This document shows, one piece after another, positions 52,885 to 63,520 of a stretch of DNA of 64,000 bases. Each line of letters starts with the position of its first letter. Position 1 is the stretch's first letter. Source of the stretch: Selaginella moellendorffii (taxonomy: Eukaryota; Plantae; Lycopodiophyta); NCBI RefSeq assembly GCF_000143415.4, contig NW_003314306.1, forward strand, positions 1,179,199 through 1,243,198. Reading direction: 5' to 3'. The translations under genes and the position numbers were made by a program. The notes beneath the pieces were generated by a model that made no database searches, was not told the origin of the DNA, and worked only from the letters and a program-made list of their open reading frames with translations.

Positions 52885-54200
52885 CTAGAGATGGATCGAT
52901 AACCATGGATGCAACTTCTCATGCGTGAAAGAAATGCGACAAGGAGACAACGAACGCAAGTCGGACAGCACCCGCAAGGATTCGTAACTTAGTCTCCCTA
53001 GCACCAGCTTCAAGTTGGCCACATCTTTGTAGTGAATACCAATCCCTTTGACTCCAAGTAAATCCTTGAGAACCAACGCGTTGCGCAGTGCAGACTCCTC
53101 CACATGAACAGTCAGATTGTTGAGAAGATCGGAGACACCCCCAGACACAAATGATTGCAACGCAGATCAGTAAGAAAAAAGAAAAACAAAGACAAATGAT
53201 CAAGATCCACCTGAAGAGAATGACAGTCGCAATGTAAAGTGTCCACACTACCAAACGAAGATAAGAGCCTGTCGATGGTGATATTGTGGTGGCTTTTAAA
53301 ATAAAAAAGGGAGAGCTTGGAGACCAGAGGCATGAACCAAGACATCTCGGCAATCGTATCCATCTCCCAGGCTCCAAATAGCGTCAAGCAACGTACCTTC
53401 TCGCATCGCTTGTCAAGAACACAACAGCCGTAAAAGCTGGCCACCTTCAAATCCTCGGAGTGCAACCGGATGCTCACTAGAGTTCCTGGGCTGTGTACTC
53501 CCACCAGCAGAGCTTCCAGCTGTGGGGCGTCGATTGTAAGCTCAAACGCCTCAAGGTCCTCATCGCATTGCCCGAGCACACTCAGAGCTTTGAGGTTTCC
53601 ACTCGAGACTGTAAGGGATTGCCCGCCAACAATGACAGCGCTCAAAACCTCCAGCCTTGGGCACGATGCTAGCAGCATCGGGAGCAGCGCGTGAGGGACG
53701 GGGCTGACAAGCTTGCAAACTTCTAGGGCCTGGAGAGAGCACGACACCAAGCTCTTGGTGCTAATGCCCATCGTCCCACTTATGTGGATCATCTGGATCG
53801 CGGTGGAGCACGCGATCAAGCTCCAGACCGCCGGTCCCCACTCGAGCCCTTCCAGTTGGAGGGCGAGCCTTGTGACGGAGCCAGCAGCCCAGGCAAGCCA
53901 GTGACCGCTAACTTCCATCTGGTCGTCGCCATAGCCACACTGGAGCACGACGCTGAGCTCCTTGAGGCAGCCGGGAGCCTTGTACTTGGCGCGGTGGAGG
54001 ACGCTGGAGATGGTATCCTCGGCGTCCCTCACCTCCTCCATGCTACTTACCTCAAAGTCGAAGTGGAGGCGAGAAACCGCCGAGCTCAGCTCCCGCCATC
54101 GCTTGCACACCAGCGAGCACTCCGCGAGCTGCCGCGCATCGCCCACCTTGCTCAAGATCTCCACCAGGGTGCTATCGTCCAGCTCCACGCTTCGCCTCAT
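52885..54200 (-). CDS. F-box/LRR (RNI-like) protein; last splice acceptor appears mutated
   Basis: LDDSTLVEILSKV...CSLVCKRWR (F-box), LLASCPRLEVL-type LRRs; donor after 53211, putative last exon 52885-53154. Confidence 0.8.
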
Positions 54201-57538: not shown

Positions 57539-58003
57539 TCAGAAGGATTTTCTCCCCAAATCCTTGAGATCGCTGTCCTTGTTCTTGACGAGCAGCAGCA
57601 TCTGCTCGAACTGGCGGGTGTCGCAAGCGAATTTGAGGCCGCCGCTGTGCTTGAACCCAAACTCGGACGCGGATTCCTCGAGCAGCGGGCGGAACACGGG
57701 ATGATTCAGGAGATGCGCTCGGATGATGTAGCGCTGCCTCTCCTCGCCCACGTACACCGCCAAGCAGCCCTTCGGGACGTCGCTGGAGATCCGGGCGCTG
57801 CTGCTGCCGCCGGAGCTGACGCTTCTTCTCGGAGGATCTAGCTTGCAATACACGGCTTTGCGCTCCACGACGTTGGAAGTGGAGCAGCCCATGAGATTGA
57901 AGTGGAAGCCCAGATGGTGCTGGTGCTGCTCGTGCTGGGATCCCATCTTCTTGGCCTTGCTCACCACCAGGTTGTGGATGTTGTTGCTGCTGCTGTGGAT
58001 CAT
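57539..58003 (-). CDS. SAUR: SAUR family protein (start uncertain)
   Basis: DVPKGCLAVYVGEERQRYII..LLNHPVFRPLLEESASEFGF..GGL...CD...F. Confidence 0.92.
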   Translation of the reverse strand: MIHSSSNNIHNLVVSKAKKMGSQHEQHQHHLGFHFNLMGCSTSNVVERKAVYCKLDPPRRSVSSGGSSSARISSDVPKGCLAVYVGEERQRYIIRAHLLNHPVFRPLLEESASEFGFKHSGGLKFACDTRQFEQMLLLVKNKDSDLKDLGRKSF

Positions 58004-59227
58004 ACTTTCTCTGGAACGGGAAATGCTCTCCCCTCTTTTTATTTGCGGAGATATGTGGGATTTGTGGCGAATTCCTGGAGATAAATGACAGATCTTTGGC
58101 TCAGCGTCCGCCTCGTGTGTGACGAAGAAAGCGCGCCAAGAGAGATTTGCAAGATCGAAAATGGGGCCTCTGTATAAGAACGCAAGACAAGAGCTAGAAG
58201 ATGACCTTCCTTATATCACACACACTAAGAGATCATGAGAAACGAGAGATTAGACAAATCTTTGTGAGGATTTGGAGAGCGCTCTAGAGAAATTACCCCT
58301 TTTTTGGGGGAATTTGACTAGGCAGCAGACATATCTACATGCCCCACTCTTTCTCTCCCTTTCTTTTGTTTTGCTTTACCGCCACCTTCGCTAACACTCG
58401 AGCGCAAGCGCCAGCCAACGTCTCCTCGTTTCTAGAAACAGGTCTGCGCGTGGCTGGCAGATGGAATGGTGGTGTAAAATGTACCTAAAGCGCTTGCGCT
58501 CTGGCCTTTGTGTAAAGTTTGTGAAGAAATTTGTTCTACCCCACACTCCACGAGAGGCCCACACAACACTCTTTCCCCCAAATGGCCTGAAGCTTTGCTG
58601 TAAATTATGACCGTCATCGTGGAGACCACTGAACTACCACCTAAGAACAAAATGAAAAGAAAATTGCCCAATTGCAAGAGTTTGTGCTTGAAATCGGAAA
58701 AATTCTTGCATGCGAAGGTACGGAGAGAGTACCCGCAAGTGCACCTTGACGGACATGTATGTAGAACAGTCTTCATACTGTACATACACGTATCCTACTT
58801 TGTAGACTTGGACCCACGGGAAAAGATTCCAAACACCAGGTCGCACGGATTTGTCCTTCTGTACATTTTGTTTTTTTTTTGGAGGTCGACCCTTGAAATC
58901 AAGACTCAACCTTCTCAGTTGTTTCGTCGTTTTCTCAAGTTTTTATTCAACAATTTTCATTGTTTTTGCGTGGTTCCTGTCAGTTGTCCACTATCACGGA
59001 ATATGTTGTCCATTATCACGGAATATACCTAGACGAAATCTGATTGATTTTGGTTGACTTGGCACTGACGGTTTTTCCGGAAGTATGAAATATTGGGAGG
59101 CTGAGTACTAATTTAGCTTGCTCTTGATTAATCTGTGGACGGGAAGGACGACAGGTAGCTGAGAATATCTAAGTTATAAGTCCAACAGGTGGACTTTCAG
59201 ATTCTGTGACCTCTCGCTACACCAGCT

Positions 59228-60056
59228 ATGGCTCCGGAGCTCCTCAAACAAGGTAAAATTAGGAAGCAATATCTCAAATGGAGCAATGTGGTGACTGAGG
59301 ATTGTGTGAAAGGTCTTGTAATTGAAGGGACTCAGTTTCCTCCAGGTTTGACATCTCCGGTTTCACAGAAAAGCCTCTTCCTCGCTGGAGCTGGTAAATT
59401 CCTGCCATGTTTCTTGTCCAGAGCTATTGATTGTAATGCCGGTGTCTTTCAGGTGTCCGGAGCATACAGATAAATCCCCAAGTGACCATCACTGTCACAG
59501 TTTTGGGATTTTACTTCGAGGACGGCATCTTGAAACATCTGTCCGGGAAATGGTCGGGGAAATCTGGCTCGGAGCTGGAGAAGGAGGACGATTTCTTCAC
59601 GGATATCATCAATGGTATGTATGACACTGTTGCAATCCAATCCAAGGTTTTGATATACTCTTTCTTACGCTAGCTCCATCCGAGAAAATCTTTAGCGTGA
59701 CGATGCTCAAGCCTCTTCCTGGCACCGAGTTCTCAAAGAAAGTCATGGAGAACACAAAGCAAGTGCTGGCCGAGTCGAATTCTCTTGGCGAGGACGAGGA
59801 GAAAGCAATTGAAGAGTTCTCCAAACTTTTCGAGGACCAGGCCCTCAAGCCAGGAATGGGGCCGTTTTACGTGTCTTCCTCCTCCGGCCTTGGAGTCGGC
59901 TTTACGGACCCAGACGAGCCATCCAACTTAAAAATCTCGTCTTCAATAGGAAACGTGAAGTTTGCAAACGCTCTCCTGAGCACCATGATCGGGAAGAACC
60001 CGGTGTCTCCAGCTTCGAAAGCTTGTATCGCGCAACGCCTCTCAGCGCTGCTGTAA
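59228..60056 (+). CDS. CHI: Chalcone isomerase (type-II-like residues), 4 exons
   Basis: Exons 59228-59252, 59313-59393, 59453-59614, 59674-60056; FLAGAGVR, TVLGFY, KWSGKSGSEL, EFSKKVMEN, STMIGKNPVSPASK. Confidence 0.9.
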
Positions 60057-60079
60057 TCGAACGTTTCGAGAGTTTACCA

Positions 60080-61218
60080 TCTCTTTGTGTAGTAAGATCA
60101 AACGAATACCTCACGGGATTAACGTTGACGTATGTTCTTCGTGATCTTAAATTTGGACCACTGCTCATTCCTTGGAACAAAATCCGGCCTCACCACCAAT
60201 CCCTCTCGTCAATCCTGACGTAAATCCCCTCCACGGCTCCATCCCTGTCCGCCGAGTTGCAAGACATCAGAAGCTTCATCCACTTGGCCTTGCTCTTGAC
60301 CAGCATCCCATCAACCATGAAGATCCCGGGAACTTTTTCTATCGACTCCTCCTCAGCTTGATCCCAGCGTTAAACCTCTCCCGGCTGTAAAATCTCTCCT
60401 TTTCAACGTCCAGGATGTCAAATGCGATGAAGTAGTCCGGTATCCTAGTAATGGATCGAGTGAATGGCCACCATCCACTCGCCATAGAGTATCATCTTTC
60501 CCGGCTCGTCCCCCAGCAAGCGAAACAGCCTTTCGTTTTGCTCAGTAATCCACCGGTCCAAAACTTCATACTCGAGGATATGAAGTGAGAGCGGTTCTGT
60601 GCGAGGATCCTGCCGTCGTAACCCAAGCTAAAGGCCATGTTTGCTCCATCGATCTTCGCCTCAAAGCCGTCGTCATCTCCAGTGCGGTGCTCAAGTCCGC
60701 CACCAAGTCGTCCGGTGTGCCGCTCTTTCCCCCGGTGTCAAACCTGGTATACCTTTTCACAAAGTCCTCCAGCCACTTAGTTTCCAAGACGCAGCTCAAT
60801 GGCTTTGGCGGCGGTCATTCGCGGCGGCTCTCCCGTCCTTTGGGATGGAAATGTGTGAGCGTTCATCTTCTCACCGCGCGGTACAGTCGAGAAGCCTTGC
60901 AAAAGGGTCTACCATGGCTCACGAAATAGCACGCCAGGACGGTACCGCCGGGCATGGTGATGGAGGAATGGAGCATTTCCGAATTTCCTCCTCTTCCTTT
61001 AAGCGCCAAGAAGATGGAGTTTGCAAATTGTTTCCATCCACGTCACTCCACAAGGTGCTATTCGCCGCGGAAGAACTCCTGGGCTCAAACGCTGGCACTT
61101 CCCAGCTCCAGCTCCGGAATGCCGACGACTCTCCTATCCTGGTGAAGATGCTACACTCGACTCCATAGCCTGGCATGATTCACTCCACTCAGGAAAGATT
61201 TAAGAATGGACTCACCAT
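60080..61218 (-). pseudogene. Dual-specificity/PTP-type phosphatase + ATP-dependent RNA ligase (Rnl2-like) fusion, pseudogenised
   Basis: GTVLACYFVSHG and MTAAKAIELR..LET...EDFVKRY (phosphatase tail); FDTGG.SGTPDDL, FEAKIDGANMAFSL..ILAQNRSHF, ILYGEWMVAIHSIHY, PDYFIAFDILD, VEGIYVRIDE, VVRPDF...W (ligase motifs). Several frameshifts. Confidence 0.8.
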
Positions 61219-62994
61219 GGCAGGAAACGAGAGCTTTCACTTCCTGGTCCTGAACTCCGCTAGAACCCTAAACTGGTACCATAACAAACAAGATAGCTCT
61301 TTATTGATGGGATAACGTGGGACTGTGGATCAGATCACACTGGTCGGCATCCTCGCGGGAGATTGCAAGAGTTAAAGCATGCATTCCTATTCAGAACGCC
61401 TCCGCAAACCACTCGAGTGTACTGGCACACAGCTGGGCAAACTGGAAAAGCCAACGTTATATAAAAATGGAATAAGATCTAATACTAGATCATGTAAGAT
61501 TGATCGCTCACCTCGCTGGAGGAGCGCCCGCTGTCCAGCAGCTTCAGCTTGCATCGCACCCCCTGATACATGAACAAGAATTAGAAAGAATCTTCACTCA
61601 AGCGGAGATTATACCCAAGAGAACCAGCAGCACCACAGCAATTGCAATGACACTTGTTGATTTCATCGCCATTTCCAATCCAAGCACAGAAAGTAACAGA
61701 TTTTATAACCGCTGTGATTTGTGACTTTTCTGCAATCAGAAAAGTCAAGCCTCCCAAGTGAGACTAGTCCTTCTTTAACAGTAAGTCGTGGTCATTCTAC
61801 AAACGATCACGTGCATCTACCATATAAAACTCGAGTATACTGAATTTTTAATTTGCCATGGATTTTGGTTCTCCAAATAGTGTCAAATACAAATTAAATA
61901 CACTTACAAAGCCTAATGGACAATGCACAGTAAATTATTATTTTAGTAACATAATTAAAACGTTTAATCTATTATTTGTAGTATCTAGTATATATTCTTA
62001 TTAATGTTGATATCTGTATGATCCAGATTTAATTTTAAATTTAATAGCTATAATTATTTTGAAAAATATAATTTATTTTGTGAGGTCCAATTGTACGACT
62101 ATAATGCCACATATTATTATTAGTATAGTAGGATTTTGGTAGCCATTATATTGGTTTCAATCCACTCTTGCATATAAGCTAAGGTTTTTGGATTAATCAA
62201 ATATATGTATTTCTGTATTCTATGCATTGAAAATTTTGATTCTCCCTCAAGGAGTGCTTTGATTTGTGCTTTTAATTTAGATTTAATTTATCATCTAGAT
62301 CTCTTTTATTCTTCTAATTTTTTCCATTTCTTCTCATTTACTTTTCTTCTTTTCATTCATCTTCATAATAGAGCAATAGCTTCTTCTTCTTTTGACTTTG
62401 GAGTAATAAGTAGTATAATTGCTCAATGCTATATGGTTGTAGTTGAACAATCAAACTTAGTTGATGGTGGCATTCACAACATGTGTATATAACTCCTCTT
62501 GCTCTTGCAAGCAAACTTTGTGTCTGGCTAAAATTCTTTTATATGAATCTTAGGGATGATATATAGTATTGGTTTAATCACTTTATAGTGATTGCCACCT
62601 ATCATTCTTGGGATATTGCCTAGTGTCTACACAAGTTTCCCATATATCTTAAAAGGATATCATTTCAATGGTATAATGGTTTAAGTGTAACTACTAGTAT
62701 GGATTACAACTTTCTTCTAAACATCTTAAATGCGCATTTAAACATGTTGACAATTGTGATAATATATTCTAGCAATTCCATTATCTCTATTAAGGGTTGT
62801 CTGAGTTAATTATGCAATTTGATGTTCACTTTTAAAGCCTATTTCTTTGTGTGGAGCAAAATATATTAGAGCGGATTAAATTAGGAATATTGTGGTTAAC
62901 GCTTTATCAACATCTTGTGGGACTAAATGCACTTGCCCCAACCACCTTTGATGACGCTCTTCAACTAGTACAATGCTATAAAATATCACCTCTC

Positions 62995-63520
62995 TATAAG
63001 TAACTATAAAGAATAACTCAAAAAATGATCTATGATTTAAATATAAAGAGAAAGGGCCCATGAATAAAACTACACCCCTTTTTCAATTAGTTAAGGAAAT
63101 TAAAATTTTTATGGTTAATCATCTTTGGGTTCAAATAATACTAGGTTAGATGACTTCCCGAGAAATCCAAATTAAAGAGTTTATATTTGGTATTAGAAGG
63201 GTTTTAAATTTGACTTTGTTGATTACCTAGATCACACTATATATTGTGATTGATATTAATAGGTTTAGTTTGCCTCTAGCTGGGTGTTAAAAGAGTAGGG
63301 CTTTTAGGGAAAGCTATAGCTCGCAGCTTCCATTCACGAGAGCGTGAAATTACAAGAAAGTGTAATAGATCCTAAATAGCCAAAGCTAATGACTCGAAAA
63401 AGAATCCATAATGTTTAAATATAAAAAAAAAGGCCTATGAACAAGAGTGCACCCCTTTTTCCAATCAGTTAAAGGTTTTGGGATATTCAAGGTTAAGCAT
63501 CTTTGGGTTTGAATAATACT
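62995..63520 (+). mobile_element. Older, deaminated Cassandra-like TRIM copy (3' LTR truncated)
   Basis: LTR 62995-63185 (TATAAGT..GTTTATA), PBS TGGTATTAG, interior homologous to 44933-45120 (CATTCACGAGAG-GTGAA), second LTR ~63370-63520. Confidence 0.85.

Follow-up and report, generated by a model that had tools for sequence, protein, structure and literature searches.

The minus strand of the Selaginella window (the whole stretch of 64,000 nt that was analysed) carries, at ~60119-60988, a dead fragment of an RNA-repair gene of the 'Swiss Army Knife' (SAK) type, which is truncated at its 5′ end and internally deleted. We assign a probability of about 0.9 to this reading. The fragment comprises a frameshifted RNA ligase domain preceded by the C-terminal half of a cysteine phosphatase. 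What survives is the last ~80 phosphatase residues and ~176 of ~230 ligase positions, distributed over three frames, with the kinase excised. The fragment appears to have neither start codon nor promoter of its own and lies in the 1-kb gap that separates two expressed genes.

The initial annotation had proposed a decayed phosphatase plus ATP-dependent RNA ligase piece from a multi-domain heal-and-seal protein, and this is borne out by the SAK profile and by the Pfam domains of relatives. Of the extent that it had assigned (60080-61218), the core at ~60119-60988 stands while the periphery does not, as sub-profiles and frameshift-aware alignment detect no family likeness upstream of ~61000. Three-frame translation of 59800-61400 recovered all of the quoted motifs on the minus strand in the frames described: GTVLACY (60946-60926), EAKIDGAN (60662-60639), QNRSH, LYGEWMVAIHSIHY, FIAFDI, EGIY and VRPDF. 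They are spread over different frames, with stops or frame changes between them. The parts of the relic are listed in their coding order; P0006 and P0007 are two full-length relatives that are described below.

60911-60988, minus: PTP-SAK remnant with degenerate P-loop and the following helix, GNSEMLHSSITMPGGTVLACYFVSHG, catalytic Cys and Arg lost (collinear matches of relatives, sub-profile, z ~5.5)
60780-60827, minus: remnant of the phosphatase C-terminal helix, PPRMTAAKAIELRLGN, in another frame than the preceding piece, from which a stop also divides it (assigned by visual comparison with P0006/P0007, weak when taken alone; within the region of the z ~5.5 test)
60740-60796, minus: end of the PTP-SAK domain, SCVLETKWLEDFVKRYTRF, resembling ...LETPQQEDFVKQYYNY of relatives (P0006 382-450 aligned to 60946-60740; frameshift-aware alignment)
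60668-60739, minus: possible remnant of the ligase N-terminal segment, GGKSGTPDDLVADLSTAL versus G....DD... (marginal for the first 40 ligase residues: 27.2 versus a null of 21.8 ± 2.2, with 2 of 100 null windows reaching the score)
60570-60665, minus: ligase motif I piece, FEAKIDGANMAFSLGYDGRILAQNRSHFISSS, lysine codon at 60656-60654 (PF09414 6-33; SAK profile 689-721)
60448-60573, minus: ligase motif III piece, EYEVLDRWITEQNERLFRLLGDEPGKMILYGEWMVAIHSIHY, with a stop codon at its end (PF09414 43-81; E 3e-14; top public matches 45-52% identical)
60360-60455, minus: ligase motif IIIa piece, TRIPDYFIAFDILDVEKERFYSRERFNAGI (PF09414 84-112; E 1e-8)
60193-60351, minus: ligase motif IV piece, ...DGAVEGIYVRIDERDWW (SAK profile 799-844, E 2e-5)
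60119-60202, minus: ligase motif V and natural C-terminus, GLVVRPDFVPRNEQWSKFKITKNIRQR, followed by a stop; overlaps the 3′UTR of a chalcone isomerase (CHI) gene in antisense (SAK profile 849-872 of 877, E 8e-5; 70% identity to the tail of P0007)

The ligase domain, which is of the PF09414 type, is nearly complete from motif I to the natural stop codon. A SAK profile was built from 135 aligned full-length family members (877 positions) and searched against the 2883 stop-free six-frame segments of the window. The top five matches across the window all fall on the ligase pieces, which are collinear with the profile (689-721, E 6e-10; 725-766, E 3e-14; 767-795, E 1e-8; 799-844, E 2e-5; 849-872, E 8e-5). 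Together they extend over the ligase profile from motif I up to the natural end of the protein and its stop codon, and cover 176 of the ~230 positions. Where relatives are conserved to at least 90%, 37 of the 47 covered columns (79%) have been kept, including the lysine of KxDG. Identity to any of 275 relatives amounts to 35-47% over the 176 columns. The C-terminal ligase with its SAK motifs is thus present as sequence only, as its reading frame is broken.

Three pieces also match the Pfam RNA_ligase profile (PF09414) collinearly, each of them below threshold (profile 6-33, 19.3 bits; 43-81, 20.5 bits; 84-112, 13.1 bits). Relic pieces were searched separately; for the phylogenetic tree they were combined as a single row, gapped where the frame breaks, without adding residues. 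Single pieces found no match among PDB sequences and nothing relevant in NCBIfam, and the motif IV piece, used in a feature search of the ESM Atlas, returned just sub-threshold clusters of hypothetical bacterial proteins.

The phosphatase remnant is more degraded. The piece at 60866-61042 reaches E 12 with the whole SAK profile and has no Pfam match. With a sub-profile of the PTP C-terminal half it reaches E 0.033 and is the best of the 2883 segments, a score which one unrelated segment equals. In 25 relatives a match to GGTVLACYFVSHG (60949-60911) is found right after the P-loop, in every case in collinear order with the ligase. Segments of 15 relatives that extend from the P-loop to the end of the domain were compared to 60730-61010 by frameshift-aware alignment, giving a mean score of 45.1, while the null is 29.9 ± 2.8 (z ~5.5). 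None of 120 GC-matched random windows reaches the observed score, and we therefore consider the phosphatase tail to be real. Its end bears the ...LET..Q..FV..Y motif of the SAK family. The HCx5R loop had been described as deleted; its position is in fact occupied by the degenerate HSSITMPGGT, according to an ungapped alignment to the P-loop of P0006 (relatives: HCGG(G)KGRTG). The catalytic Cys is replaced by Ser and the Arg by Pro, and compared with the consensus the loop has lost one residue.

Other domains of the family have left no trace. Frameshift-aware alignment of the phosphatase front half to 61000-61300 is at chance level (65 of 100 null windows do as well), and so is a kinase in 60650-60900 (score reached by 12 of 60 null windows). 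No signal was seen anywhere in the window with sub-profiles of the kinase, of the middle region and of the 2H domain. A possible relic of an N-terminal 2H phosphoesterase, cautiously raised before, was not found, as the best match of the 2H sub-profile (E 4.4) lies elsewhere in the window. Between the phosphatase end and motif I, the ligase-start motif KFPRTPHL is missing, and this gap measures ~70 codons versus ~260 profile positions in relatives. Since the gap is so short and the upstream domains are at chance, we conclude that the kinase was excised and that the gene is truncated at its 5′ end. A polynucleotide kinase between phosphatase and ligase is a feature of the SAK family that the initial annotation did not expect.

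Family assignment was obtained from an exhaustive phmmer search of 1.84 billion cluster representatives, which stand for ~15 billion proteins. The query was the motif III piece (60448-60627), which is the best conserved. It returned six true relatives with 45-52% identity over the piece, two of which are full-length (P0006 and P0007, 857 and 929 residues). In both, Pfam recognizes 2H-SAK (PF22547), PTP-SAK (PF22784, a DSP-PTPase phosphatase domain), an AAA_33 P-loop kinase and RNA_ligase (PF09414). As Pfam assigns SAK domains to these full-length relatives, the architecture is a curated one. It had been thought undescribed, but the 'Swiss Army Knife' domains PF22547 and PF22784 already have Pfam entries. 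The SAK protein is said to have been named by Burroughs and Aravind in Nucleic Acids Research in 2016. A literature text search under the SAK Pfam names found no paper, and we are not aware of any biochemical work on a SAK protein.

From the domain families, a division of labour can be predicted for the intact relatives. The 2H phosphoesterase would open 2′,3′-cyclic phosphate ends, the PTP-type cysteine phosphatase would then remove the remaining phosphate, the P-loop polynucleotide kinase would phosphorylate the 5′-OH and the ATP-dependent ligase would seal the break via a lysyl-AMP at the KxDG lysine. The kinase of one SAK member resembles the kinase domain of mammalian polynucleotide kinase/phosphatase (PNKP; E 5e-13) and also an RNA 5′-OH kinase of Mucorales. 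The SAK ligase is without a close solved relative: a profile of 19 sequences matches 3qwu with E 4e-4 and NgrRnl (5cot) with E 0.018.

Word-index searches found SAK members in many fungi (Aureobasidium, Agaricomycetes, chytrids), in red and brown algae, in a giant virus, in a bdelloid rotifer and among many metagenome proteins. The kinship to multi-domain proteins of fungi and protists that had been proposed is therefore confirmed, relatives being found in fungi, protists, viruses and metagenomes. Novelty for plants, which had also been suggested, does not hold, as intact full-length SAK genes are annotated in a moss (Ceratodon purpureus), a liverwort (Calypogeia fissa) and two ferns (Adiantum capillus-veneris and A. 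nelumboides; proteins P0014 and P0023). All of these land-plant genes are located on large chromosomal scaffolds. The moss gene M758_8G169100 (P0171; CM026441.1, L002 3001-5568) is intact, and relatives of it with 67-81% identity occur in Logan and JGI data. The liverwort protein P0122 (CBCUJL010000002.1, L001 3001-7757) has 1017 aa and its gene has three introns of ~520-560 nt, one of which interrupts the ligase domain where the relic continues without a break. Its 2H domain is not recognizable, which it has in common with some other SAK relatives from red algae. It is loosely associated with members of ~1000-1100 aa from red algae (Gracilaria) and chytrids.

As to the origin of the fragment, it may descend from an intronless SAK gene that was acquired horizontally from a fungus-like or other microbe and is now eroding. 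This is a sub-case of the dead-fragment explanation, concerning the origin rather than the nature of the stretch, and we regard it as possible, though somewhat doubtful. In a maximum-likelihood tree of the ligase domain (60 rows, 228 columns), a single plant clade is rejected (p-AU 9e-5, with the plant group named after inspection of the tree). The moss clade is nested within fungi of the Dikarya (support 100/99), so the Ceratodon gene, which is intronless and has ordinary plant genes on both sides (for a TPP enzyme and for BOP1), is a candidate for fungus-to-moss transfer. The ferns cluster with chytrids and Aureobasidium. Horizontal acquisition is also favoured by the occurrence of the family in rotifer and giant virus, by the relic being intronless and by a review which, as quoted in a preprint, describes a wide lateral spread of RNA-repair ligases. 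However, the relic itself is placed in a backbone polytomy, and its joining with the clade of Dikarya and moss is not rejected (p-AU 0.45). Moreover, the row to which it is closest by path is the liverwort gene with its introns, so that old vertical descent could equally explain its presence. For the SAK family in plants as a whole, horizontal origin and turnover are plausible.

Alternatively, the relic could be a retrocopy or segmental copy of an intact, functional SAK gene elsewhere in the Selaginella genome, which would encode a working heal-and-seal enzyme. The relic is free of introns over ~830 nt while local genes have introns of 59-70 nt every few hundred bases, most of its conserved ligase residues are kept (the 79% given above) and intact SAK genes exist in other non-seed plants, all of which speaks for such a copy. 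We nevertheless consider it improbable. The phmmer search, which represents ~15 billion proteins, found nothing above 52% identity and no plant protein, the best identity is 47% among the 275 relatives (176 ligase columns), and no Selaginella protein is named among the best 120 matches of each of three SAK-family searches. The intact Selaginella paralogues that the initial annotation had thought possible thus did not emerge from these protein searches. The intron of the liverwort gene in this stretch has no counterpart in the relic, which fits an intronless parent like the moss gene as well as a retrocopy.

In its genomic surroundings, the relic is located between two expressed genes:

59100-60128, plus: chalcone isomerase (CHI) gene, convergent with the relic; stop at 60054-60056, 3′UTR to at least 60128 (PF02431, E 1e-45 and 9e-17)
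61111-61672, minus: three-exon gene for a 71-aa secreted six-cysteine peptide, CDS 61672-61335, 3′UTR to ~61111 (spliced joints 61441/61512 and 61561/61614; contiguous high-depth contig 61111-61417)

The CHI gene has three GT..AG introns of 59-60 nt, which are spliced in public RNA contigs, and its 3′UTR overlaps the last codons of the relic in antisense (record 16 of X7 reaches 60128). The peptide gene (61335-61703, minus) codes for a signal peptide followed by six cysteines in a CxxxC...CxxxC pattern, and its contig depth in run X1 is the highest of the stretch; a Pfam search with its exons, one by one, gave no match. Further genes in the neighbourhood code for a SAUR-type auxin-responsive protein (57542-58003, minus; PF02519, E 9e-24) and for an F-box protein (53115-54200, minus; PF12937). 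As these are ordinary plant genes, the relic resides in native plant DNA. Repeat scanning of 58500-63500 for transposon ends or target duplications flanking the relic revealed only short pairs at chance level, and a self-search of the window found no second copy of it.

An own ATG, a first intron and a telo-box-like site had been attributed to the relic. The corresponding strings exist (ATG-gtgagt at 61218, TTTAGGG at 61272), but both are within the 3′UTR of the peptide gene. Because the contiguous, unspliced 3′UTR contig 61111-61417 spans both, they do not belong to the relic. Parts of this region, 61022-61140 and 61143-61248, recur in part in other transcripts, so that the peptide gene may belong to a small family. 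No Pfam match was obtained for the plus-strand ORF 60641-61165 or for the ORFs in 61002-61267, and the two blocks are therefore best read as 3′UTR common to paralogous peptide genes. A mosaic of captured genes at 61022-61248 was also considered but is less likely, as the ORFs are blank in Pfam and the blocks occur partly in other transcripts.

At least seven frame changes or stops disrupt the relic. Over 59673-61070 the broken sequence is found again in independent RNA and DNA contigs. At each of the five ligase frame changes, contigs of four independent runs, which come from four studies, agree with the window apart from 1-2 base differences and from indels that restore no frame. Frameshifts are a common artefact of draft assemblies, but an intact gene disrupted only by assembly errors is next to impossible here since independent contigs reproduce the breaks and since kinase, phosphatase front and 2H domain are simply absent. 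The indels comprise 12 extra nt at 60355 (in three RNA runs) and deletions of 8 nt at 60604-60613 (run X1), of 22 nt at 60812 (run X9) and of 1 nt at 60784 (run X4). This shows that the locus drifts by indels, as is expected for DNA without coding constraint. DNA run X4 has no contig over ~60320-60670, which may reflect a deletion allele or a data gap.

RNA from the relic is found, with a depth of ~53-69 in run X1, at a few percent of the level of the neighbouring genes and is unspliced, no splicing being seen in RNA contigs within 60051-61070. Depth in run X1 is above 3000 over 61140-61373, ~1000 over 61023-61139 and only 53-85 over 60087-61022, while it is 1422 for the CHI exons. A contig of run X9 (record 21) continues unspliced from spliced CHI exons through 61070. 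Most simply, the RNA of the relic represents read-through. As the contigs are unstranded, transcription from the peptide gene, antisense transcription from CHI or a weak promoter of its own would all fit. With its frames broken, its kinase cut out, no start or promoter of its own and RNA that is scant and unspliced, the relic encodes nothing.

As a pseudogene fragment of a curated family, the relic is neither a new system nor a working one, and by itself it changes little. Its value is historical, in that a lycophyte lineage, that of this spikemoss, once carried a gene of the SAK family. A lycophyte point is thus added to the patchy distribution of SAK genes in plants, where a dead spikemoss copy joins those of moss, liverwort and ferns. 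The failure of the ligase tree to support a single plant ancestor fits a lateral spread and a quick turnover of RNA-repair enzymes. A more far-reaching scenario would be that lycophytes had a functional four-enzyme SAK gene, gained independently of those in moss, fern and liverwort, which some of them may keep, so that an intact copy would be present in Selaginella or a relative and early land plants would have repeatedly captured and lost microbial RNA-repair machinery. We consider this speculative and on the whole unlikely. The intact genes of moss, liverwort and ferns are candidates for an RNA end-healing and sealing activity in plants apart from tRNA ligase, and they are better experimental targets than the relic.

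Among known RNA-repair systems, Trl1 and the plant tRNA ligase (RNL) also combine healing (kinase, phosphoesterase) and sealing in one polypeptide (PMC6379707, PMC4408790). However, they have an Rnl1-type ligase, the ligase comes first and a cysteine phosphatase is lacking (PMC6379707, PMC4408790 and our Pfam results). The relic had been said to differ from the standard plant tRNA ligase and does so, as its pieces match PF09414 and the Pfam search yielded no match to PF09511 (RNA_lig_T4_1). The nick-sealing RNA ligases of the Rnl5 type, NgrRnl from Naegleria and DraRnl from Deinococcus (PMC4408790), share with the relic an ATP-dependent nucleotidyltransferase ligase that belongs to PF09414 and has no C-terminal appendage. 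In contrast to SAK proteins, they have an N-terminal domain of their own and no fused healing enzymes, and the kinship of the SAK ligase to them is distant, as indicated by the weak 5cot match.

To the SAK proteins themselves, the relic is similar in the order of phosphatase and ligase, in the ligase signatures (EK.DGAN, QNRSH, GEW, HS..Y, F.A.D, EG.Y, VR.DF and W) and in the C-terminus. It differs in not being an ORF, in lacking the 2H domain, the middle region, the PTP front half, the kinase and KFPRTPHL, in the replacement of the phosphatase Cys and Arg and in a ligase that is only 35-47% identical to known members. The SAK genes of other plants differ from it in being intact, the liverwort gene having an intron in the ligase domain and the moss gene belonging to a fungal clade. 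The Calypogeia protein is nonetheless the nearest row to the relic by path and, with 46% identity, ranks third among the 275 relatives.
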